From Octopus sinensis (Eukaryota), in NCBI RefSeq assembly GCF_006345805.1, contig NW_021836054.1, positions 1 through 28,167 on the forward strand: a DNA stretch of 28,167 nucleotides. Direction: 5' to 3'. Positions 3,828-24,655 of the stretch are shown here, piece after piece (position 1 is the stretch's first letter; each line of letters opens with the position of its first letter). A program made the translations under genes and the position numbers. The notes below the pieces were generated by a model, which worked only from the letters and a program-made list of their open reading frames with translations, ran no database searches and was not told the origin of the DNA.

Positions 3828-4383
3828 GTGAAGACGCATACCTGAGTGGTTAGAGTATTTTGTTCACGATCGAAAGGTCCTGCGTTCGATTCCTGATTGT
3901 GCGTTTTGTCCTTGAACAAGACAATTTACTTCACGTTGCTCCCGTCCACTCAGCTAGCAAAAATGAGTTGTACCTGTAATTCAGAAGGCCCAACCTTATT
4001 ACATTCTGTGTCATATTCTGTGTCACGTTGAATCTCCCTTAGAACTTAGAGGTGGCAGAAACGTTAGCACACCGGGCGAAATGCGTAGTCGTATTTCGTC
4101 TGCCGTTATGTTCTGAGTTCAAATTCCGCCGAGGTCGACTTTGCCTTTCATTCTTTCGGAGTCGATTAAATAAGTACCAGTTACGCACTGGGGTCGATAT
4201 AATCGACTTAATCCGTTTGTCTGTCCTTGTTTGTCCCCTCTGTGTTTAGCCCCTTGTGGGTAATAAAGAAGTAGGTATACATGTCTGTGGAGTGCTCAGC
4301 CACTTGCACGTTAAGTTTATAAGCAGTCTATTTCGTTGATTGGATCAACTAGAACCCTCGTCGTCGTAACCGACGGAGAACCA
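3828..4383 (+). mobile_element. tRNA-derived SINE family C, interrupted by a SINE-B copy at 4049-4273
   Basis: tRNA-like head (AGTGGTTAGAG...GTTCGATTCC), central GTCCTTGAACAAGACA (CORE-like motif, from memory) and tail ...GTCGTCGTAACCGACGGAG, shared with 4387-4700 and 27109-27438. Confidence 0.85.
4049..4273 (+). mobile_element. SINE family B, single unit with the X-type tail, nested in SINE-C
   Basis: TGGCAGAAACGTTAGC A-box region, GAGTTCAAATTCC B box, core GAGGTCGACTTTGCCTTTCATTCTTTCGGAGTCGAT (Meta/MESC-like, from memory and unverified) and tail ...TAGCCCCTTGTGGGTAATAAAGAA. Confidence 0.9.
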
Positions 4384-5594: not shown

Positions 5595-5777
5595 CATTTC
5601 TTATTTCTTTATTGCCCACAAGGGGCTAAAAACAGGAGGGATGCGGCAAACAAGGACAGACAAACGGATTAAGTCGATTACATCGACCCCAATGCGCAAC
5701 TGGTACTTATTTATTTAATCGAGCCCTAAAGGATGAAAAACAAAGTCGACCTCGGTAGAATTTGAAATCGGCGGACG
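5595..5777 (-). mobile_element. SINE-B copy lacking its head, X-type tail
   Basis: The reverse complement contains AAATTCTACCGAGGTCGACTTTG...GTACCAGTTGCGCATTGGGGTCGATGTAATCGACTTAATCCGTTTGTCTGTCC...GGGCAATAAAGAAATAAGAAAT. Confidence 0.85.
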
Positions 5778-7269: not shown

Positions 7270-8354
7270 GATGCGTGTGTATGTGTGTGTGTGTAAGTGT
7301 TTGTTCGTATGTGTATACGTATTGTGTATGGATATAGGCACGTATGTGCGTATATATGTGTGTATTTGTATGTATATGTATATGTATATGTATATGTGTG
7401 TATGGATATGTTCGTATATGTGCGTATATGTGCGTATATTTTTTATGTATGTGTATATGTGTGTGTATGGATATAGGCACGTATGTGCGTATGTCTGTGT
7501 ATGTTTGTGCATGTATGTGTATATATGTGTGTGTATGTTTGTGTTTGTATGTGTATACGTGTGTGTATATGTGTGTGTATGTTTGTGTTTGTATGTGTAT
7601 ACGTGTGTGTATATGTGTGTGTATGTTTGTGTATATGTGTGTATATGTTTGTGTTTGCATGTGTATATGTGTGTGTATATGTGTGTGTATGTTTGTGTTT
7701 GTATGTGTATACGTGTGTGTATATGTGTGTGTATGTTTGTGTATATGTGTGTGTATGTTTGTGTTTGCATGTGTATACGTGTGTGTATATGTGTGTGTAT
7801 GTTTGTGTTTGTATGTGTATATGTGTGTGTATGTGTGTGTATGTGTGTGTATATGTGTGTATATGTTTGTGTTTGCATGTGTATACGTGTGTGTATATGT
7901 GTGTGTATGTTTGTGTTTGTATGTGTATACGTGTGTGTATGGATATGTGCGTATGTTTGTGTAGGTATGTTTGTATGTATGAATATGTGTGTGCGTGTGT
8001 GTGTGTGTGGATATGTGCGTATATTTGTGTAGGTATGTTTGTATGTATGTGTATATGTGTGTATGGATATATGCATGTATGATCGTATGTTTATGCATGT
8101 TTGTATATATGTATATGTGTGTGCGTGTGGATATATGCACATATGTGCGTATGTTTGTGTGTGTATGTTTGTATGTATGTGTATGTGTGCGTATGGATAT
8201 GCGCGTATGTTTGTGGGTGTGTATGTATGTGTGTGTGTATGGATATGTGCGTGTATGCATCTGTATGTCAGTGTTATGGAGATTTGTGTATATGTGTGTA
8301 TGTGTACGTATGTGATTTTGTGTATGGATACGTATGTATATATATATATATATA

Positions 8355-8430
<76 letters not shown>

Positions 8431-9688
8431 TGTATGTTATGTATATGACTGTATAAATGGATATGTGTGTGTACATGTATGTATGTCTGTGAGTATGTGC
8501 ATGTATATAGATATATGTGTATACATGTGTATACACCTGTGTATAGGAATTCATGCGTATATGTGTATATATGCGCGTACGTATATATATGTGCGCATAT
8601 GTGTATATATGCGCGTATATGTGTATATATCCGTATATATGTGTATATATGCATGTATATGTATATATGCGCATATATGTGTATATATGCGCGTATGTGT
8701 ATATATGCACGTATATGTATACGCATGTGCACATATGTGTATATATGCGCGCGTATATGTGTATATATGCACGTATATGTATATGTATGTGTACATATGG
8801 TGTATATTCTGCGCATAAGTATATATATGCGCGTATATGTGTATATATGTGTTGTGTATGTTTGTTGTTTTTATTTGTAGTACGTGTGTGTATATGTGTG
8901 TGTGTTTGTGTTTGTATGTGTATACGTGTGTGTATTGTGTGTTTGTATGTTTGTGTATATGTGTGTATATGTTTGTGTTTGCATGTGTCTATGTGTGTAG
9001 TATGTGTGTGTATTGTTTGTGTTTGTATGTGTTACGTGTGTGTATATGTGTGTGTATGTTTGTGTATATGTGTGTGTTATGTTTGTGTTTGCATGTGTAT
9101 ACGTTGTGTATATGTGTGTGTATGTTTGTGTTTGTATGTGTATATGTGTGTGTGTGTGTGTGTATGTGTGTGTATATGTGTGTATATGTTTGTGGTTTGC
9201 ATGTGTATACGTGTGTGTATATATTGTGTGTTTGGTTGTGTTTGTATGTGTATACGTGTGTGTATGGATATGTGCGTATGTTTGTGTAGGTATGTTTGTA
9301 TGTATGAATATGTGTGTGCGTGTGTGTGTGTGTGGATATGTGCGTATATTTGTGTAGGTATGTTTGTATGTATGTGTATATGTTGTATGGATATATGCAT
9401 GTATGATCGTATGTTTGTGCATGTTTGTATATATAGTATAGTGTGTTGCGTGTGGATTATAGCACATATGTGCGTATGTTTGTGTGTGTGTATGTTTTTG
9501 TATTGTGTATGTGTGCGTATGGATATGCGCGTATGTTTTGTGGGTGTGTATGTATGTGTGTGTGTATGGATATGTGCGTGTAATGCATCTGTATGTCAGT
9601 GTTATGGAGATTTGTGTATATGTGTGTATGTGTATGTATGTGATTTTGTGTATGGATATGTATGTATATTATATATATATATATATCT

Positions 9689-9760
<72 letters not shown>

Positions 9761-10195
9761 TGTATGTTATGTATATGACTGTATAAATGGATATGTGTGT
9801 GTACATGTATGTATGTCTGTGAGTATGTGCATGTATATATAGATATTGTGTATACATGTGTATAACACCTGTGTATAGGAATTCATGCGTATATGTGTAT
9901 ATATGCGCGTACGTATATATATGTGCGCATATGTGTATATATGCGCGTATATGTGTATATATCCGTATATATGTGTATATATGCATGTATATGTATATAT
10001 GCGCATATATGTGTATATATGCGCGTATGTGTATATATGCACGTATATGTATACGCATGTGCACATATGTGTATATATGCGCGCGTATATGTGTATATAT
10101 GCACGTATATGTATATGTATGTGTACATATGTGTATATATCTGCGCATAAGTATATATATGCGCGTATATGTGTATATATGTGCGCATAAGTATG

Positions 10196-10470: not shown

Positions 10471-12670
10471 ATTGACGTTTTAATTTTCGTCTGTCACTAC
10501 CATGCTCGCGATTACCACCGCCACCATCAACATCACCACCATAATGGTTACAGTCACTTTCATTGCTACCACCAACACCAACACCAACACGACAACAACG
10601 GCATCACTACCATCAACACAGCCATTATGACCATACACCAACATCACCAACACCACCACCACCAACACCACCATCAACACCACCACCAACAACAACAACA
10701 CCACCACCAACAACAACAACAACAGCATCACCACAATCAACACCATCAACGCCACCATTATGACCATCACCAACACCACAACCAACACTACCAACACCGC
10801 CACCAACAACACCACCACCAACACCACCACCAACAACACCACCACCACCAACACCACCACCAACCACCACCACCAACACCACCAACACCAACAACAACAA
10901 CAATACCACCAACAACAACACCACCACCAACAACAACAACAACAACAACAACAGCATCACCACAATCAACACCATCAACGCCACCATTATGACCATCACC
11001 AACACCACCACCAACACTACCAACGCCACCACCAACAACACCATCACCAACAACAACACCACGACCATTAATAGAGACCATCACCACCATTAATACCGCC
11101 ACCATCAATACAATCATTGCAACCGCCGCCGCCACCACCACCATCAACAACAACAAGACCAGCAGTATCATCACCAACGCCACCAACCACCATTCACACA
11201 TCCATTGTGACCATCACCACTGCCACCAACTACACCCTCACCACCACCAGAACCAACGCCTCCCTCGGCCTAAAACTATCGCCTCCAGCAACGTGACCAC
11301 CACAACTGCACCCGTTATCACTATCAATATAAAGAGCAAGACCACCATTTTTACCACCATCAATACCATTGCAACACCATCGACATCATCACCATCACCA
11401 CTGCCACCACCAACACCAATATCGTGACCAGCATCATCATCACCATAAGCACATTATCACCACCATCACAACCACCATCATTACGGCTACCAATGCCATT
11501 ACAATGACCACAATCATCATCATCATCATCATCATTGTCAACATCATCATCATTCATCATCATTGTCAACATCATCATCATTCATCATCATCATCATCAA
11601 CATTATTATTATTATCATTGTCATCATCATCATCATTCATCATCATTCATCATTCATCATCGTCATCATCATCATTCATCATCATTCATCATCATCATTC
11701 ATCATTTATCGTCATCCTCATCTCCATCATCATCATCGTCGTCCTCCTCATCATCATTCATCATCATTATTCATCATTCATTATCATTCATCATCATTAT
11801 CATTCATCATCATTATCATTCATCATCATCATTCATCATCACCATTCATCATCACCATTCATCATTCATTATCATTCATTATCATTCATCATCATTATCA
11901 TTCATCATCATCATTCATCATCACCATTCATCATCATTCATTATCATTCATTATCATTCATCATCATCATCATTCATCATCATCATTCATCCTCATTCAT
12001 CATTCATCATCACTATCATCATCATCAGCAGCAGCAGCATCATTACCATCGCCATCATTATCATTCGTAATTGCAACCGATATATTTTTCTTTCTCCTGG
12101 TTCATCTATTGCTGCTGCTGCTGTTTCTGCTGTTATTGCTGCTGTAGTTGCCGCTGGTGCTTTTGTTGTTGTTGCTATTGTTGTTGTTATTGCTATTCTT
12201 CATCACATTGATATTGTTTATTTACCCAGAGTACATCATTAAAAATAGAGAAATAATTATTATTATTGATTTTGCGGGGAGGCTTAGGGTAGTGTTAGCA
12301 GTGGTGGTGGTGGTGGTGGTGGTGATGAGAGTGGTGATGGTAGTGGTGATGGTGGTGGTAGTAATGGGGGTGATGTTGGTGACGGCTGTGATAGTGGTGG
12401 TGTGGTGGTGGTGAAGGTGGTAGTGGTGGTGGCGACCTCGGCGGTGGTGGTGGCAATGGCAGCGGTGATAGCTATGGTGGTGGCGGTAGTAGTGATGGTG
12501 GTGAGAGTGGTGGTAGTGGTGGTAGTGGCGGTGGTGGTGGTGGTGGTTGTGGTGGTTGTGATGGTTATGGTGGTGATGGTAGTGATGGTGGTTATGGTGG
12601 TGCTTGTAGTGTTGGTTGTGAAGGTGATATTTCATGTACCTGTGGTGGTGGTGGTGGTGGTGGTGGTTGT
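10320..12670. repeat. Trinucleotide-repeat patchwork: (TTG)n, (CAC/CAA)n, (CAT)n, (GCT/GTT)n, (GGT)n
   Basis: Approximate blocks are 10320-10470, 10495-11500, 11510-12065, 12105-12195 and 12298-12670. There is an internal 229-bp repeat (AACAGCATCACCACAATCAACACC at 10721 and 10950). Confidence 0.9.
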
Positions 12671-12989: not shown

Positions 12990-13604
12990 CAAAGAGCAAT
13001 AAAGATTCAAGTTAATTTAAAAAATTTACTTGAATATGGTACCTAACTTAGATGCACCAAAAAAAACTATACTGATTTAACAATACAGTAATGTGGGGTG
13101 ATTATAAGCGAGAAAGAAGCAACATATATATATATATAAGTATGTATGTATGTATGTATGTATACATATATATGTATACATACACGTATATATATATATA
13201 TATTTAAAATATATATGTATATATATGTACATAAATATGTATACATACATATATATATATATATATATGTATTATGTATATATATACGTGTATACATAAC
13301 GTGCATGTGAGGATATTGAACATGCCTCTTCTCAGTTTCTTCTCCATATGTGGGGCGCTCCTATGCGCATGTGTGTATATGTATGTGTGTGCGTGTGTGT
13401 ATGTGTGTATGTGTATGTGTGCATGTGTCAATACGCACACAATCAAACACAGGCATATAATATATATCGCACCTCCTTGTTTATCTGCCCGTCTCTCTCC
13501 TGCAACATATATATATATATGCACGCACACATATATATATATATACCTATGCATACATATATATATATACATATATATACATATATATATACATATATAT
13601 ATAC

Positions 13605-13656
<52 letters not shown>

Positions 13657-13657
13657 A

Positions 13658-13725
<68 letters not shown>

Positions 13726-13796
13726 CATATATATACACATATGTAGTTGCGTTCATGCATCTATGCATGCGTGATATATATATACATTCATATATA

Positions 13797-13831
<35 letters not shown>

Positions 13832-13935
13832 ATGTTGGTGCTGCATTCGTGTATGTTTATGCACATGTGTCAGTGTGCGAGCGTGCGCATGCGTGTGTGT
13901 GTATATTTGTGTGTGTATATATATGTGCGTATGTA
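12818..13935. repeat. Compound (TG)n/(TA)n/(TATG)n microsatellite field with small unique islands
   Basis: Seen directly. Confidence 0.9.
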
Positions 13936-14356
13936 TAGGTATGTATAGTGTCAGTATTCGTGCGTTTCCACGAGAGATTGTTTAAGCGGTTTTTGTGGCT
14001 TGTCGAAGAAAGTCTACACAACGTGCCTTGCAGCTTTCTTGTTGGCTTTTGAAGAACTGCACAAACGTGCCTTCCAGCCTAGAATAAATTACAGAATATG
14101 GAAACAATCAGAATATCCTACGCCGTATTTAGTCTATTTACAGCCAGGCAATTTCAGAGAAACTAACTTTACTATAGCAAACACAGATAGAAGCGATGTG
14201 GGTACGTGGGTGGTTTTTATCGAAACAAGCGATGCTTATTGGTATGTAAGCCTTAGTAAGTATTTCCAGTATTAGCACGTTACAACTAATTACGGAAAAG
14301 GTGAGCAATGGTTTACATTTCTCCGTGTTGTAGAATGTGTAGCTTCTTACCACACT

Positions 14357-15291
14357 GGCGTAGCTCTGTAGTAAGAAGCTTGCTTCACATCTACATGGTA
14401 CCCTGGGCGAGCTGGTCAAGGCGGCGGGCTGGCAGAAACGGTAGCACGCCGGGCGAAATGCTTAGCGGTATTTCGTCTGACGCTACGTTCTGAGTTCAAA
14501 TTCCACCGAGGTCGACTTTGCCTTTCATCCATTCGGGGTCGATAAATTAAGTACCAGTTACGCACTGGAGTCGATATAATCGACTTAATCCGTTTGTCTG
14601 TCCTTGTTTGTCCTCTCTGTGTTTAGCCCCTTGTGGGTAGTAAAGAAAGAGGTATTTCGTCTGCCGCTACGTTCTGAGTTCAAATTCCACCGGGTCGACT
14701 TTGCCTTCATCCTTTCGGGTCGATAAATTAAGTACAGTTACGCACTGGGGTCCATGTAATCGACTTAATCCGTTTGTCTGTCCTTGTTTGTCCTCTCTGT
14801 GTTTAGCCCCTTGTGGGTAGTAAAGAAAGAGGTATTTCGGCTTCGCCGCTACGTTCTGAGTTCAAATTCCACCGAGGTCGACTTTGCCTTCATCCTTCGG
14901 GGTCAGATAAATTAAGTACCAGTTACGCACTGGGGTCCATGTAATCGACTTAATCCGTTTGTCTGTCCTTGTTTGTCCTCTCTGTGTTTTAGAGCCCCTT
15001 GTGGGTAGTAAGAAAGAGGTAGTTCGTCTGCCGCCTACGTTCTGAGTTCAAATTCCACCGAGGTCGACTTTGCCTTTCATCCATTCGGGGTCGATAAATT
15101 AAGTACCAGTTACGCACTGGAGTCGATATAATCGACTTAATCCGTTTGTCTGTCCTTGTTTGTCCTCTCTGTGTTTAGCCCCTTGTGGGTAGTAAAGAAT
15201 TAGGGACCTTAGGCAGGTGTCTTCCACTGTAACATCGGGCCGATCAAAGGCTGTTGAGTGGATTTGATAGATGGAAACTGAAAGCAGACCG

Positions 15292-16384: not shown

Positions 16385-17673
16385 TGCTAATGTAAAACGT
16401 GACCTGGGCGTTATTGTCGACAGCGATTTGCGTTGGACAAAAGACATCGCTGAAATTGCCAAGAGGGCTGAGGGTGTCTTGGCATCACTCACCAAGTCCT
16501 TTGTGAGCTGCTCTCCGGCTATATATCTGCGGCTTTATATAGCTATGGTACGACCTCACCTGGAATTTGCATCACCGGTCTGGAACCCCTATCTTGCCTA
16601 GGATATTAATCGTCTGTAAACCGTTCAGCGACGTGCAACCAAGAGAATACCCTCCATCAGGCATTTGCCATATTCTGAATGCCTTATTTCCCTGGGCATG
16701 GATACATTGAAACTCCGACGTCTGACAGCTGACTTGGAAGACACCCATAAAATTATTAACCATCTTACAAACAATAACTCTGAGCATCTTTTCAAACTCC
16801 ATCTGTCTAACACCCGTGGATATATTTACAAAGTCAGAAAACAGTACAGCTCCCATGACTTTCGGAAACATTTTTTCAGGCTAAGAGTTGCTGAAGTATG
16901 GGAACAGACTGCCGGCATCAGTTGTTAGTTGTTGGAGCACTGCATCCTTCAAAACTTCCATGCTTCCTGAGATTCGCCAACACTACAACTGATTTTCTCC
17001 CCTCCATACACACACACAGGCATGTATCTGACTCATACACTGTTCACTTTCCAGACATTTGTACATTACTGCATATACTTTATACGCTCTTTTGACAAGA
17101 TGTGGTGCACCTGAGCACTGTGTACAATAATTTCATTATTATTATTATTATAACACCCGTGGACATGTTTACAAAGTCAGAAAACAGCACAGCTCCCATG
17201 ACTTTCGGAAACATTTTTTCAGGCTAAGAGTTGCTGAAGCATGGGAACAGACTGCCGGCATCAGTTGTTAGTTGTTGGAGCACTGCATCCTTCAAAACTT
17301 CCATGCTTCCTGAGATTCGCCAACACTACACCTGATTTTCTCACCTCCATACACACTCACAGCATGTATCTGACTCATACACTGTTCACTTTCCAGACAT
17401 TTGTACATTACTGCATATGCTTTATACGCACTTTTGACAAGTTGTGGTGCACCTGAGCACTGTATACAATAATTTCATTATTATTATTATTATTATTCCT
17501 GAGATTCGCCAACACTACACCTGATTTTCTCCCCTCCATACACACACAGGCATGTATCTGACTCATATACTGTTCACTTCCCAGACATTTGTACATTAAT
17601 GCACATACTTTATACGCACTTTTGACAAGTTGTGGTGCACCTGAGCACTGTATACAATAATTTCATTATTATT
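16385..17673 (+). mobile_element. CR1-clade LINE 3' end followed by two progressively shorter 3'-coterminal copies (16385-17150, 17151-17495, 17496-17673)
   Basis: Translation KRDLGVIVDSDL...LYIAMVRPHLEFASPVWNPYLA*DINRL*TVQRRATKRIP. Each unit ends GGTGCACCTGAGCACTGT(G/A)TACAATAATTTC(ATT)n. Confidence 0.9.
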
Positions 17674-17932
17674 TTAAAAATAAACGACACAAAATCAGAT
17701 AAACTAACTACAACAATAGCTTCATTTCTTATTAAGAATGCTGAGAAGGCGGAAGGTAAATCGAGACACTCTCATAAATCAAGACACTACTATTTTTAAG
17801 CCAGTTTGATTAACTCTGATTCTCTTTTGGTACACAAATATTTAGCTTGGAGTCGAACTTTAGATAAACACATACGAGTTTACCTTTCAACTGAGAGGAG
17901 GCGGTTTCTTTTTGTATTATTGATAATTACAT

Positions 17933-18130
17933 AATTTATCGACCCCGAAAGGATGAAAGGCAAAGCCGACCTCGGCGGAATTTGAACTCAGAACGTAGCG
18001 GCAGACGAAATACCTATTTCTTTACAACCCACAAGGGGCTAAACACAGAGGGGACAAACAAGGACAGACAAACAGATGAAATACCGCTAGCCATTTCGCC
18101 CGGCGTGCCAACGATTCTGCCAGCTCGCCG
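17933..18130 (-). mobile_element. SINE-B host copy containing a 58-bp inserted X-tail (18015-18072) flanked by a 13-bp direct repeat
   Basis: CAGACGAAATACC (18002-18014) and CAGATGAAATACC (18073-18085) flank TATTTCTTTAC...GGACAGACAAA. The host head is at 18086-18130. Confidence 0.85.
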
Positions 18131-18424
18131 CAGAGACCGAAAGAATACCGTGATACAGTGTGATAAAACCTTCATTAACTGGCCCATGATATTAAATAAA
18201 TAGCTTATGGTATCCAACTTAATAGCTCCAGTTCTCTTCAGCAATTGTTCGTGTAAACTGTTGAGTATACAAACGATTTGAATGCTTACTTGGTCAAATG
18301 ATGTTCAAACCCCCGAAAGAAAACCCAAACAGGTTCGAAGATCGATCAACGCTGTTCAGAATTTTCTTTCAATCTGCGAAGAAATAATTAAATTTGAAAT
18401 GTTCCTATATCTACAATGTCGATT

Positions 18425-18426
<2 letters not shown>

Positions 18427-18456
<30 letters not shown>

Positions 18457-18681
18457 TGTATGTATGTATGTATGTATGTATGTATGTATTATGTATGTAT
18501 GTATGTATGTATGTATGTATGTATGTATGTATGTATGTATGTATGTATGTATGTATTATGTATGTATATATTTGCATGTGTATATGCATGCATATTCGTG
18601 TGCGCATATGTATGTATGTAAGTCTGTATGACGTATTTATGTATGTTGTATGTATGTATGTATATATGTGTATATATATAT

Positions 18682-18714
<33 letters not shown>

Positions 18715-18811
18715 GTATATATATGTATATATACATGTATACATATATATATGTATATACATATATATATATATATATACAATATATATATATATATATA
18801 TTATAATATAT

Positions 18812-18866
<55 letters not shown>

Positions 18867-18897
18867 GTATATATATATGTATATATATATATATATG
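18427..18897. repeat. (TATG)n followed by (TA)n microsatellite
   Basis: Seen directly. Confidence 0.95.
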
Positions 18898-19110
18898 TAG
18901 TTCGTTTAAAACAGGTAATTATCAGATTTGAAAATAATTCATTAATCATCGATTTTCCGATAATCTTTTAAAGACTCAAGTAATTTTCAATGATTTTTGT
19001 TTTCTTTTTTTTCCAGGGGACTTATTATCACATTACTTTTGGTCTTCTTTTCTTCTCATTTCTACGCTGCTCCTTCAGCTTTACTTCCTCATCATCATCA
19101 TCATCATTAT

Positions 19111-19665: not shown

Positions 19666-20146
19666 GCAAGTTGATTTAATTTTTCTCTACTCTTTAAGAT
19701 GTACCGCGATGTCACTTTCCGTAGTATCTATGCGAGAGATATCATACAAATCACAAACATCAATGGTGACAGGCTATCTCTTTGAAATACGACTCAGTTG
19801 GTGTTGAAACTCCCGCCAAGTTTTCCACATAAAGTCAACTCTGTATTCCAATCGTTCATTGATCTCTTGATAAAATTTGACATGTTGTCAGACACCTGTA
19901 CCAACTCAAGACTTTCTAAAATCCAAGAATGGAGGCCCTTGTTATACGCTTTCTTATAATCGTTCCGCCCTTGCTCAGATTAGTGTTTTCTTGCAATCGT
20001 TCAGTATCATTCTGTCCATCAGAAGTTGGTCTTTTGTCCCTCGGTTTTTCCTTCTGCATCCATTCTGTCCTACTGGCAGCTTGTCATTCATTTCCAGTAA
20101 ATTATACACGCAATCAGATATTATTCTTGTCATCAGCTTCTACATC
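19666..20146 (-). pseudogene. R4/Dong-clade LINE reverse transcriptase fragment, ending just before the catalytic motif
   Basis: Manual translation: KLMTRIISD...LPVGQNGCRRKNRGTKDQLLMDRMILNDCKK / DYKKAY (19944-19961)...HSWILESL...SMNDWNTELT...FQRDSLSP (19764-19787) LMFVICM...KLNQL. This matches the pattern EQKGCR...GTKDQLLID / DYKKAYD.VPHSW / IFQGDSLSP / KINHLLFMDD. Confidence 0.85.
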
Positions 20147-20160
20147 ATTATTATTATTAA

Positions 20161-20760
20161 GGCGACGAGGTAATAGGATCATTAGCACGCCGAGCAAAAT
20201 GCTTAGCGGTATTTCATCCTGGCAGAAGCGTTAGCACGTCGGGCGAAATGCTTAACGGTATTTAAATTCCGCCGAGGTCGACTTTGCCTTTCATCCTTTC
20301 GGGGTCGATAAATTAAGTACCAGTTACGCACTGGGATCGATGTAATCGACTTAATCCGTTTGTCTGTCCTTGTTTGTCCTCTCTGTGTTTAGCCCCTTGT
20401 GGGAAGTAAAGAAATAGGTATTTCGCTTGCAGTTATGTTCTGAGTTCAAATTCCGCCGAGGTCGACTTTGCCTTTCATCCTTTCGGGGTCGATAAATTAA
20501 GTACCAGTTACGCACTGGGGTCGATGTAATCAACTTAATACCTATGTCTGTCCTTGTTTGTCCCCTCTATGTTTAGCCCCTTGTGGGTAATAAAGAAATA
20601 GGTATTTCATCAGTCATTACGTTCTGAGTTCAAATTCCGTCGAGGTCGATTTCGCCTTTCATTCTTTCGGGCTCGATAAATTAAGTACCAGTGAAACACT
20701 GGGATCGATGTGATCGATCACCCAAAATTCCAGGCCCTATGCCAATAGTAGAAAAGATTA
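20161..20760 (+). mobile_element. Three nested SINE-B-family copies: Y-tailed host (20161-20218 plus 20601-20760), X-tailed insert 1 (20219-20263 plus 20417-20600), 5'-truncated X-tailed insert 2 (20264-20416)
   Basis: Direct repeats GGTATTTCATC (20208-20218 and 20601-20611) and GGTATTT (20257-20263 and 20417-20423). The last segment ends in a different tail (CCCAAAATTCCAGGCCCTATGCC...AGAAAAGATTAT). Confidence 0.8.
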
Positions 20761-20763
20761 TAA

Positions 20764-22648
20764 TTATTATTGTTGTTGTTGTTTGTTGTTGTTGTTATTA
20801 TTATTATGATTATTATTTACTTTTTATCTGCATGTTTGTTACAATCACTCATCGAGACACACCCAGCATCCTAGGGCGAGTGAAAGATAAGTGGTGTTAC
20901 AGTGTAACTGAAATCTTGAGGAGGGGAAGTGGCAAGCGTAGTAGCGAATATCTTCATGTAATACAGCACAGACATTTAAATTGATAGGCTTTTCCTAGGG
21001 ATGTGGGCAGTACTTGTCAGCACAATATTTTGCATTTCTCTGAGACACAGTTCTCCTGGGATGTTATCTAGACGTTTATGACATCCTTTTTTTATCATAC
21101 CTAGGTCACCTACAATAACAAGACAGCTCTCGCTTTAGGATAAGAGATGTTACTGTTTGACTGAAAGCTTGGGGAGGGGACAGCAGTGAAATATCTTCAT
21201 GTAATTCTACATAGGCATTTAAATGGATAGGATTTTTCTCAGGATATGGACAGTACCTGTCAGCACAATCTTTTGAATTTCTCTGAGACATGGTTCTCCT
21301 GGGATGTTACCTAGATGTTTCTTACATCCCTTTTTTTATCATATCTTGAGTATCTACAATAACAGGAAGAGTTATTATTATTACTAATATTATTGTTGTT
21401 GTTGTTGTTATTATTATTATGATTATTATTTACTTTTTATCTGCATGTTTGTTACAATCACTCATCGAGACACACCCAGCATCCTAGGGCGAGTGAAAGA
21501 TAAGTGGTGTTACAGTGTAACTGAAATCTTGAGGAGGGGAAGTGGCAAGCGTAGTAGCGAAATATCTTCATGTAATACAGCACAGACATTTAAATTGATA
21601 GGCTTTTCCTAGGGATGTGGGCAGTACTTGTCAGCACAATATTTTGCATTTCTCTGAGACACAGTTCTCCTGGGATGTTATCTAGACGTTTATGACATCC
21701 CTTTTTTTATCATACCTAGGTCACCTACAATAACAAGACAGCTCTCGCTTTAGGATAAGAGATGTTACTGTTTGACTGAAAGCTTGGGGAGGGGACAGCA
21801 GTGAAATATCTTCATGTAATTCTACATAGGCATTTAAATGGATAGGATTTTTCTCAGGATATGGACAGTACCTGTCAGCACAATCTTTTGAATTTCTCTG
21901 AGACATGGTTCTCCTGGGATGTTACCTAGATGTTTCTTACATCCCTTTTTTTATCATATCTTGAGTATCTACAATAACAGGAAGAGTTATTATTATTACT
22001 AATATTATTGTTGTTGTTGTTGTTGTTATTATTATTATGATTATTATTTACTTTTTATCTGCATGTTTGTTACAATCACTCATCGAGACACACCCAGCAT
22101 CCTAGGGCGAGTGAAAGATAAGTGGTGTTACAGTGTAACTGAAATCTTGAGGAGGGGAAGTGGCAAGCGTAGTAGCGAAATATCTTCATGTAATACAGCA
22201 CAGACATTTAAATTGATAGGCTTTTCCTAGGGATGTGGGCAGTACTTGTCAGCACAATATTTTGCATTTCTCTGAGACACAGTTCTCCTGGGATGTTATC
22301 TAGACGTTTATGACATCCCTTTTTTTATCATACCTAGGTCACCTACAATAACAAGACAGCTCTCGCTTTAGGATAAGAGATGTTACTGTTTGACTGAAAG
22401 CTTGGGGAGGGGACAGCAGTGAAATATCTTCATGTAATTCTACATAGGCATTTAAATGGATAGGATTTTTCTCAGGATATGGACAGTACCTGTCAGCACA
22501 ATCTTTTGAATTTCTCTGAGACATGGTTCTCCTGGGATGTTACCTAGATGTTTCTTACATCCCTTTTTTTATCATATCTTGAGTATCTACAATAACAGGA
22601 AGAGTTATTATTATTACTAATATTATTGTTGTTGTTGTTGTTGTTGTA
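20764..22648 (-). repeat. Three near-identical ~615-bp tandem units, each a dimer of two diverged R4/Dong-clade LINE 3' ends, separated by (ATT)n(GTT)n
   Basis: Landmark ATCGAGACAC at 20851, 21464 and 22082. Minus-strand peptides are LVIVGDLGMIKKGCHKRLDNIPGELCLREMQNIVLTSTAHIPRKSLSI* (20976-21122) and LPVIVDTQDMIKK/GCKKHLGNIPGEPCLREIQKIVLTGTVHILRKILSI* (stop 21219-21221; one homopolymer frameshift). Both match the R4/Dong C-terminus pattern PV.VGALG...IQK..L.GTA.ILR. Confidence 0.85.
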
Positions 22649-23199: not shown

Positions 23200-23566
23200 A
23201 TACATACATACATACATGCATACATACATACATGCACACATACATACATATATATATATATATACATACATACACACATACATGCATAGATACATGCACA
23301 CATACATGCATAGATACATGCATACATGAATACATACATACATACATACATACATACATACATACATACATACATACATACATACATACATACATACATA
23401 CATACATACGAGCGCGCATATATACATGCAGGCATGTATAGAAAACTATACTGATAATGTCTAAATTCTAACCAGGGAATTGCTTCTTGGCTGGAAACAA
23501 GCTCTCCCCCACCTGGAGGTTAATTCTGAAACTAAAATCACGAATTCATCCATACATACATACACA

Positions 23567-23598
<32 letters not shown>

Positions 23599-24655
23599 TA
23601 CATACATACATACATACATACATACATACATAAATACATACATACATACATACATACATACATACATAATACATACATACATACATACATACATACATAC
23701 ATACATACATACATACATACATACACACATGCATACATACATACATACAAACATACACACATACATACATACACACATACATACATACATACATACACAC
23801 ACACATACATACATACATACATACATACATGCATACATACATACATACAAACATACACACATACATACATACATACATACACACACACATGCATACATAC
23901 ATACATACATACATACACACATACATACATACACACATACATACATACATACATAATACATACATACACACATACATACATGCATACATACATACATACA
24001 TACACACATACATACATACATACAAACATACACACATACATACATACACACATACATACATACATACATACATACATACATACATGCATACATACATACA
24101 TACACACATACACACATACATACATGCATACATACATACATACATACATGCATACATACAAACATACACACATACATACATACACACACACATACATACA
24201 TACATACATGCATACATACATACATACAAACATACACACATACATACATACACACATACATACATACATACATACATACACACATACATACATACACACA
24301 TACATACATACACACATACATACATACACACATACATACATACATACACACATACATACATACACACATACAAACATACACACATACACACATACATACA
24401 TACATACATACACACATACATACATGCATACATACATACACACATACATACCTACATACATACATACATGCATACATACATACATACACACATTCATACC
24501 TACATACAAACATTCATACCTACATACATACATACATACATACATACATACATACATACATACATACATACATACATACATACATACATACACACATACA
24601 TACATACATACATACATACATACATACATACATTTGCATATGTACACACATTCAT
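23200..24655. repeat. (CATA)n/(CA)n arrays (about 23200-23435 and 23550-24655) separated by a ~110-bp unique spacer
   Basis: Seen directly. Confidence 0.95.

Follow-up and report, generated by a model that had tools for sequence, protein, structure and literature searches.

A SINE and a partner LINE of Octopus sinensis that probably share one preferred insertion nucleotide in older SINE heads

SINE structure and anatomy of the focal locus

We analysed a 28,167-nt stretch of Octopus sinensis DNA (assembly GCF_006345805.1, contig NW_021836054.1, positions 1 to 28,167 of the forward strand; the window), which carries several copies of a short interspersed element (SINE), among them a block at 20161-20760 in which copies lie inside one another. 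The SINE measures ~231 nt: A-box- and B-box-like motifs mark its head, a core follows, and a tail of 65 nt, here called the X tail, forms the 3' end. All SINE positions refer to the copy at 14418-14650 of the window. Position 1 is the start of AAGGCGG, the A-box-like motif lies near 25-36, GGTATTTC occupies 50-57, the B-box-like motif 75-87 and the X tail 167-231, terminating in GTAAAGAAATA. The last ~33 nt of the tail form a small hairpin followed by AATAAAGAAAT, and there is no T4 run inside the unit. Its classification as a SINE is supported by a 3' tail held in common with a long interspersed element (LINE) and by 13-20-bp duplications of varying sequence around copies at ~15 non-SINE loci. 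A majority-rule consensus, used for divergence, was made for the non-coding SINE only and none for the LINE.

The head folds as a long hairpin with the loop UAGC, and the nick discussed below falls at the 3' edge of this loop, between the two box-like motifs. Because neither ARAGORN nor Rfam returned a tRNA match for the head, the label "tRNA-derived" refers here to motifs only (A-box- and B-box-like sequences and an anticodon-like hairpin, recognized by eye and by folding). Throughout, genome-wide pattern counts are lower bounds and listed matches stem from the initial 15-20 Mb of a single contig. Among 100 listed well-kept heads two almost fully linked types occur, GCTTAGC|GG (54/100) and GCGTAGC|CG (45/100). 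Positions 45 and 50, which pair to close the hairpin loop, covary between the types (U.G to G-C), which suggests that the hairpin is under constraint.

A sequence-only reading, made from the letters of the window, had described 20161-20760 as three nested copies, and all of its coordinates and motifs were found again at their places in the window sequence. In BLAST comparison with 14418-14650, 20159-20215 corresponds to SINE positions 1-57 (79% identity), 20219-20414 to positions 12-231 without 57-77, 20417-20598 to positions 50-231 (91% identity) and 20601-20717 to positions 50-166, after which a different tail (Y) follows. X tails terminate at 20416 and 20600, and GGTATTT is found at 20257-20263 and 20417-20423. 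The features of the locus are:

20159..20218, plus strand: 5' portion of the older, Y-tailed host SINE (positions 1-60, A-box-like head), ending with the upstream duplication copy (BLAST and sequence)
20208..20218, plus strand: upstream copy of the target-site duplication GGTATTTCATC, 11 bp, identical to 20601-20611; its length lies within the 8-17 bp of ~20 other two-head loci
20219..20263, plus strand: start of the inserted block, SINE positions 12-56, a second head with GGTATTT at its end (sequence and BLAST)
20264..20416, plus strand: SINE positions 78-231 and X tail, representing a 5'-truncated second insert (7-bp duplication at 20257/20417) or else the remainder of the first unit after a 21-bp deletion (57-77) (sequence and BLAST)
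20417..20600, plus strand: unit in register, covering SINE positions 50-231 and terminated at 20600 by the X tail GGGTAATAAAGAAATA (91% identity; TRF period 184)
20601..20760, plus strand: 3' part of the host, comprising the downstream duplication copy (20601-20611), SINE positions 50-166 and the Y tail (sequence and BLAST)

Since GGTATTTCATC stands at both 20208-20218 and 20601-20611, the first and last stretches belong to one older Y-tailed copy. The locus at 20159-20760 is this copy with a younger X-tailed block of 382 bp lodged in its head, at C49|G50, and an 11-bp duplication. It would represent a primary insertion event of that block, either as one dimer or as two successive inserts.

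For the inserted block itself (20219-20600), we regard arrival as a single dimer, with a first unit that lacks positions 57-77, as quite possible though just short of probable. Dimers move as units elsewhere, in-register dimers are the commonest form, and the putative second duplication would be just 7 bp compared with 8-20 bp elsewhere. Two successive nested inserts are favored in turn by the break exactly after GGTATTT, which is expected from a truncated insert at the site, and by the minus-strand locus at 18014, where a similar out-of-register piece is accompanied by a 13-bp duplication. Moreover, 20263|20264 is a junction found nowhere else in the genome, which speaks against a deletion-bearing subfamily. 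Thus the split Y-tailed host and its exact 11-bp duplication stand as originally described, while the supposed second insert can equally be read as a 21-bp deletion in a dimer.

The sequence-only reading had also proposed that a long insert restores a B box behind the host A box and so keeps the locus transcribable. At 20161-20760 the first intact B box lies ~200-250 nt downstream of the A boxes; as no B box stands at normal distance behind either of them, the claim of preserved transcription fails here. Assembled read contigs from four runs were compared with 19700-21200: repeat contigs number in the hundreds of thousands, and the unique ones stop at 20207.

The junction at head position 50 is frequent genome-wide

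The exact 28-nt pattern that joins the X tail to GGTATTTC has 28,091 matches in the genome compared with 0 for its reversed control, so the focal junction is far beyond chance. X tails number at least 118,034. Among the first 100 listed, ~50 continue as SINE position 50, while the non-SINE flanks begin with GGTA in ~15 cases, are TATA-like in ~20 and start with AGAA in a few. After correction for the anchor letter of the pattern, ~40-50% of X tails adjoin the head site, which supplies the fraction that the sequence-only reading had wanted computed. The hexamer CGGTAT occurs 461,172 times in the genome and its SINE form TAGCGGTAT 60,468 times. SINE heads make up ~13-20% of CGGTAT hexamers yet take 42-88% of GG-type insertions; part of this excess is later array growth.

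Two-head loci reveal insertion into DNA at a C|GGTA(T) motif

Separate insertions can be recognized where a head runs to GGTATTTC plus 0-24 nt and is then followed by a second near-complete head. This arrangement was found in 163 cases compared with 0 in the control. At ~20 independent loci that were fetched, the host stretch after GGTATTTC is repeated directly after the tail of the insert, giving duplications of 8-17 bp, among them exact repeats of 15 and 16 nt with variants found in that host only. Host-specific variants are common to both duplication copies in 27/48 instances, compared with a mean of 9.6 and a maximum of 19 in 2,000 permutations of loci. Because the duplications carry variants of their hosts, the two-head cases are insertions into DNA and not products of RNA joining. 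This bears out the earlier proposal of nested insertion at one fixed position of the head. A second, rarer site at position 17 (AGAAAC) is seen in two-head form at ~10 independent loci.

X-tailed copies outside SINEs, most of which are full length, are flanked by 13-20-bp duplications that start directly after the tail. At GG-type non-SINE targets the duplicated stretch begins with GGTA(T), and the preceding base is C in 6/6 loci; the SINE head offers the same arrangement, AGC|GGTATTTC. A GGTAC site in antisense orientation in the SINE core is also hit repeatedly. The SINE lineages with GGGTAG and GGGTAA tails inserted by target-primed reverse transcription at 5'-C|GGTA(T), the kind of site that the partner LINE described below uses, with duplications of 8-20 bp.

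Two further observations concern these copies. Behind some X tails lies GGTACTTAATTTATCGAC, which is SINE core positions 121-138 in reverse complement and thus a third, antisense landing site (G000:C1:10793122, 14697371, 15808243 and 19050912). In some full-length X copies (L023, L026) position 1 is separated from the upstream duplication by 8-15 additional nt, which are an A run or unrelated sequence.

A partner LINE of the L1/Tx1 group occupies the same nucleotide

A partner LINE, for which the sequence-only reading had proposed a search with the X tail, was found. Locus L058 is the 3' end of a LINE, with open reading frame (ORF) fragments carrying FLW...GGLGMP and CCHC motifs, followed by a 3' untranslated region; its final ~33 nt agree with the SINE tail at 29/33 positions. 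The L058 fragment itself gave a weak zf-RVT match only. Its 1,111-aa relative P0153, 68% identical to the fragment, contains Exo_endo_phos, RVT_1 and zf-RVT domains, as does a second family, P0086, and the best solved match of these ORF2 relatives is human L1 ORF2p (E = 1e-50 to 2e-73). The N-terminal APE endonuclease, reverse transcriptase and C-terminal CCHC motif that mark ORF2 of the Tx1 clade and L1 group are thus seen in P0153 and P0086. As judged from these relatives the LINE is of L1/Tx1 type, and its placement goes to the L1/Tx1 group and no finer. An R4/Dong assignment, which would call for a restriction-like endonuclease behind the reverse transcriptase in place of an APE domain, disagrees with Exo_endo_phos at the N terminus of the relatives. 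An RTE assignment, which would call for a short single ORF with APE and reverse transcriptase but lacking a C-terminal zinc knuckle, disagrees with the presence of zf-RVT and an ORF2 of ~1,100 aa. A quick, non-exhaustive scan of four ORFs of the window detected no LINE domain.

A 21-mer specific to the LINE tail has 146 copies. In 135 of them (at least 92%) it is followed by AAATT and [C/G]GTATTTCG, that is, by SINE position 50, and 8 of the other 11 continue with GGTATT- or CGTATT-like sequence. For comparison, the published criterion for a target-specific element is that more than 20% of flanks are one sequence (PMC4494074). The 18 nt beyond the site differ by ~9% among 21 LINE copies, whereas in the LINE tail the eight free positions vary in 3/100 listed rows (~0.4%), which indicates that the hosts are independent. 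For both LINE copies in the listed range, a SINE head on the same strand lies 5.33-5.34 kb upstream and holds the identical 13 nt (C1:829015 and C1:11528220); one host is a solo SINE and the other an array. From these split heads we conclude that the LINE is ~5.3 kb long and that it enters at the nucleotide used by the SINE, duplicating at least 13 bp. The possibility that the SINE-like sequence after the LINE tail belongs to the LINE was rejected in view of the heterogeneity beyond the site, the unique continuation of L058 and the upstream heads. The LINE is target-specific, with C49|G/C50 of SINE heads as the insertion point of nearly all copies. The site-specific partner LINE that had been postulated thus exists, with at least 135/146 copies at the same position, but it is L1/Tx1-like with an N-terminal APE domain and not of the R4/Dong or RTE type.

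AATAAA is contained in both the X tail (window:20585-20600) and the LINE tail (L058:1318-1331); an RNA polymerase II transcript of the LINE would end 10-30 nt inside the target.

Tail lineages differ in target choice

Three variants of the SINE tail were compared by the sequence that follows them.

GGGCAA tail, 16,680 exact copies: in 100 listed rows 3 are followed by GGTA and the rest by AGAA, AAAT or TATA; 4 adjoin SINE position 17
GGGTAA tail, 19,663 exact copies: in 100 listed rows ~72 flanks start with GG, ~30 of them SINE position 50 and ~42 elsewhere
GGGTAG tail, the commonest: among the listed rows 37/~60 adjoin SINE position 50 and 5 adjoin other GGTA sites

Copies with GGGTAG or GGGTAA tails land at C|GGTA, both inside and outside SINEs, while those with GGGCAA tails hardly use the site. 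Two ideas about this choice were discarded. Resistance of CG-type heads to insertion, suggested by the 97:3 ratio of GG to CG at SINE junctions, is contradicted by the LINE, which lies in CG-type heads in ~58% of cases. Pairing of the tail trinucleotide with the target (GGUA) is rejected as the full tail is always kept.

A second tail family, CCCCCTGTGGGCAAT, was considered as another site-specific element and rejected, since its 1,193 copies have flanks of the AAAT type. This family (..CCCCCTGTGGGCAATAAAGAAATA, 1,193 exact copies) is preceded by non-SINE sequence at L084:1560-1665 (minus strand) and may be a second, non-specific LINE or a SINE relative.

Arrays also grow by duplication and move as multimers

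Not every unit in an array marks an insertion of its own. The sequence-only reading counted six junctions at three loci with the same 3' position; the positions are right. However, the three in 14418-15200 have in common an AAAGA|GG tail variant that amounts to ~0.5% of such junctions genome-wide (151 compared with 28,091 matches), and for this reason they are not independent events. The variant is clustered in few arrays, including window 14418-15199 and an array at C1:208.83 Mb, and the window array is the result of local growth or of arrival as a multimer, not of three separate hits.

The L020 dimer lies inside a perfect 19-bp duplication, and its position 50 is CG in the first unit and GG in the second; its inner repeat is consequently not an insertion-made duplication. 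Whole multimers thus move as one unit. In the L027-L030 array, array-specific variants are spread across the whole unit, demonstrating that arrays expand locally by duplication. Together with head-to-tail arrays detected by TRF and an array of at least 8 kb, these variants qualify the repeats as a satellite or tandem repeat. Terminal and internal units of arrays belong to different subfamilies, the terminal ones to Y or GGGCAA. In-register joining of the 5' end, through cDNA homologous to the target overhang, is plausible. Most in-register units cannot be demonstrated as separate insertions. Hence the proposal that nested insertion seeds satellites holds insofar as the process seeds tandem arrays, several of which grew by duplication or moved as multimers.

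Several arrays stand out individually. The 184-bp SINE-unit array at G000:C1:208832565-208840696 extends over at least 8 kb with many AAAGA-bearing units and is a true SINE-derived satellite. Head-only arrays with a 65-bp period (positions 1-65) occur at L067-L071 (G000:C1:195358943-195359248) and at G000:C7:15322772-15323082; they are probably expansions of the two-head duplication, matching the spacing of heads after a full-length nested insertion. Arrays with periods of 26 and 32 bp, derived from the first ~26-32 nt of the head (G000:C10381:37344-37973 and G000:C9071:33931-34096), may be an analogous expansion at the position-17 site.

Proposed mechanism and rival explanations

Taken together, the data make it probable that one fixed nucleotide in older SINE heads is the preferred insertion point of both the SINE and its partner LINE, and that their insertions there seed nested copies and 184-bp arrays. 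The X-tailed SINE inserts by target-primed reverse transcription at C|GGTA(T), which in the head lies at the 3' edge of the anticodon-like hairpin loop between the two promoter boxes. This CpG-containing motif appears to be uncommon in the genome, with the SINE head among its largest single sources (~13% of CGGTAT), and insertion in heads seems favored beyond that share; for these reasons the SINE family would be its own main landing site. In-register units may arise partly through homology between cDNA and target that joins the new 5' end in register. In addition, transcripts may start at the promoter of a nested insert, read through its tail, which lacks a T4 run, into the host tail, and then be retrotransposed. 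The site is most likely read by the APE endonuclease of the LINE, as in Tx1-clade elements.

Several observations weigh against this picture. The second head that proves a separate insertion is present in fewer than ~1-2% of junctions, and the LINE 5' side was examined in two copies only, with split target and duplication in 2/2. A duplication test on adjacent units (positions 58-65) gave identity slightly above that of random pairs, in a sample contaminated by full-length inserts, and a head-age test gave no clear age order for the in-register majority, with a search pattern that biased it. GGGTAA-tailed SINEs use non-SINE GGTA sites more than SINE heads, and the LINE itself carries a GGGCAA-type tail, whereas SINEs with tails of that type avoid the site. 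Finally, SINE tails adjoin GG in 97/100 and CG in 3/100 listed cases, whereas the LINE adjoins CG in ~58%; CG-type heads represent ~45% of well-kept heads. One machinery should give one spectrum at the +1 base unless the events differ in age. The difference may therefore reflect the age of events, several LINE subfamilies or 3' extensions of the RNA.

The last of these leads to a rival in which the site is read by RNA and not by the endonuclease. Master transcripts would run into their flank, and the few nucleotides of flank at the RNA 3' end would pair with the nicked target DNA and prime reverse transcription, so that target choice is inherited through the transcript. The AATAAA of the LINE would place its mRNA end 10-30 nt into the target, the SINE has no T4 terminator, and a lineage would breed true for its flank. 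We consider this unlikely, although it would account for several facts: target type follows lineage (GGGCAA with AGAA, AAAT or TATA, GGGTAA and GGGTAG with GGTA, the LINE with [C/G]GTATTTCG), the +1 base differs between LINE and SINE at the same place, SINE-borne sites are used 3-20 times beyond their CGGTAT share (~13%), and the unit is free of T4 runs. Primer pairing cannot, however, account for the conserved C at -1 in 6/6 non-SINE GGTA sites. Non-SINE targets match the head site over 4-5 nt only, the antisense GGTAC in the SINE core is hit as well, and both checked LINE copies lie in CG-type host heads, which indicates that the +1 base comes from the target. If transcript inheritance were true, self-targeting would be a runaway feedback and not a property of a protein, with each head-landed copy begetting head-landing copies, and the two head types (U.G or G-C loop closure) would be co-evolving landing pads.

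Two other explanations dispense with insertion at a preferred site. Were there no targeting, all multimers would go back to a handful of multimeric masters and to unequal crossing-over, with the junction as a frozen accident. Array-specific variants over the whole unit in long arrays, the clustering of AAAGA in few arrays, one of 8 kb, the head arrays with 65-bp and 26/32-bp periods, the dimer within a perfect 19-bp duplication and the attribution of clam SINE arrays to unequal recombination (PMC11481361) all agree with this account. As the sole cause it is refuted by the host-specific duplications at two-head loci and by at least 92% of copies of an unrelated 5.3-kb LINE at the same nucleotide in different hosts; the terminal units of another subfamily and the same GGTA preference at duplicated non-SINE sites also speak against it. 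We hold it to be very improbable, and descent from a single multimeric master, which the sequence-only reading had named as fatal to its proposal, likewise does not hold as sole cause; duplication and crossing-over stay true as a second step. Equally improbable in our view is joining at the level of RNA or cDNA, in which the reverse transcriptase runs off SINE RNA cut at the position 50 loop, or at position 17 in an RNase P-like manner, and jumps to another RNA. Both junction positions are indeed at places of tRNA processing, most junctions are without a visible duplication, and the L020 dimer was born as a unit. Yet two-head duplications carry host variants, a LINE that has no such head lies at the same nucleotide with the SINE head split ~5.3 kb apart, non-SINE targets begin with the same motifs and are duplicated, and second units are GG in 97%, compared with 45% CG among well-kept heads. 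For the two-head and LINE cases, joining is contradicted by their duplications and split heads. Preferential insertion at the head site, followed by duplication, is thus the reading that we retain.

Relation to known systems

Among the closest described parallels, together with Tx1L in Tx1D, is the case of crocodilians, where Tx1-Mar LINEs insert into Mariner-N4_AMi and SINEU-3 is carried to the same site, with tandem copies sandwiching the duplication; 90% of SINEU-3 copies have the Tx1-Mar target preference (PMC4494074). As in the octopus, a LINE of the L1/Tx1 group with an APE endonuclease uses one site of an abundant repeat and serves a SINE in trans (Kojima 2015, PMC4494074). The crocodilian target is a Mariner DNA transposon, whereas the octopus target is the head of the SINE family itself. 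Octopus insertions also differ in that they cut short and duplicate units of the family itself, so building arrays of 184-bp units, and the octopus LINE is placed only as L1/Tx1-like.

Alu copies insert into A-rich parts of older Alus. There too a SINE is a frequent target of its own family through the preferred motif of the endonuclease, but the Alu preference is weak, A/T-rich and spread over many positions, while in the octopus a single nucleotide takes about half of the copies. In R2, R1 and SART1, which have a fixed insertion nucleotide and a multicopy "safe" target in common with the octopus elements, co-transcribed downstream rRNA or telomere sequence possibly helps priming (in part PMC4494074). 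R2 uses a restriction-like endonuclease and DNA-binding domains, unlike the octopus LINE, whose relatives have an N-terminal APE domain and align best with L1 ORF2p.

Sequence-specific APE LINEs with multicopy targets also include Keno, Kibi, Koshi and Mutsu of the Tx1 clade and, in Xenopus, Tx1L, which inserts into Tx1D (PMC4494074). Their targets are a piggyBac-type transposon, snRNA and rRNA genes and microsatellites, and targeting of an own SINE is not reported for them. SINE arrays of a clam resemble the octopus arrays in having one complete head, head-less repeated units and a complete last tail; their units are in addition tail-truncated and are ascribed to unequal recombination only, with no insertion preference or partner LINE reported (PMC11481361). 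A survey of octopus repeats counts L1-Tx1 among the active LINEs and does not mention this behavior; SINEs amount to ~11.6% of an octopus genome (PMC13282606). Our literature searches found no description of a LINE/SINE pair that targets the SINE itself. Calling the arrangement a new system, as the first reading of the window did, is overstated because Tx1 LINEs that target transposable elements and carry SINE passengers are already known (PMC4494074). LINEs landing inside other repeats are known already; new here is a LINE/SINE pair whose target is the SINE itself.

The proposed mechanism would explain how a large share of octopus SINEs came into nested copies and 184-bp arrays, with arrays that begin by insertion at one nucleotide and not by unequal crossing-over alone. 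As a LINE and a SINE that share a landing pad in the SINE, the two form a natural pair for asking whether APE-LINE specificity resides in the protein or in an RNA 3' extension, and they can show how retroposons become satellites. Annotators risk listing multimers, head arrays and LINE-in-SINE composites as families of their own. Age estimates based on nesting presume random targets, a presumption that does not hold for octopus SINE heads.

Other SINE copies and repeats in the window

Four other SINE loci of the window are:

4053..4273, plus strand: solo X-tailed SINE ending in a GGGTAA tail; behind it stands GGTATACATG, a GGTA-type target outside SINEs (BLAST and sequence)
5602..5769, minus strand: 5'-truncated X-tailed SINE with GGGCAA tail, followed by AGAAATGAACG, the other target type (BLAST and sequence)
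14418..15199, plus strand: one head (14418-14466) and four in-register units of 180-186 bp (TRF 4.0 copies, 93% matches)
17928..18131, minus strand: SINE (head and positions 50-136) interrupted by an X piece that consists of tail only (18072-18015), with a 13-bp duplication at 18085-18073/18014-18002 containing one mismatch (sequence and BLAST)

The array junctions of 14418-15199 are at 14650|14651, 14830|14831 and 15017|15018. At the minus-strand locus the duplication copies are GGTATTTCATCTG at 18085-18073 and, after the tail-only piece that ends at 18015, GGTATTTCGTCTG at 18014-18002.

Very long impure microsatellites (TG/TA-rich, CAC/ATC and 1.4 kb of (ATAC)n) are found at 7342-10189, 10570-12667, 13124-13950, 18378-18930 and 23200-24633. 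These tracts occupy much of the window and hold most of its long ORFs, which are not genes. Other direct repeats lie near the SINE loci at 16808-17683 and 20783-21500, with units of 343 and 188 bp and 84-97% identity, and include a 105-bp exact repeat whose copies are 613 bp apart.

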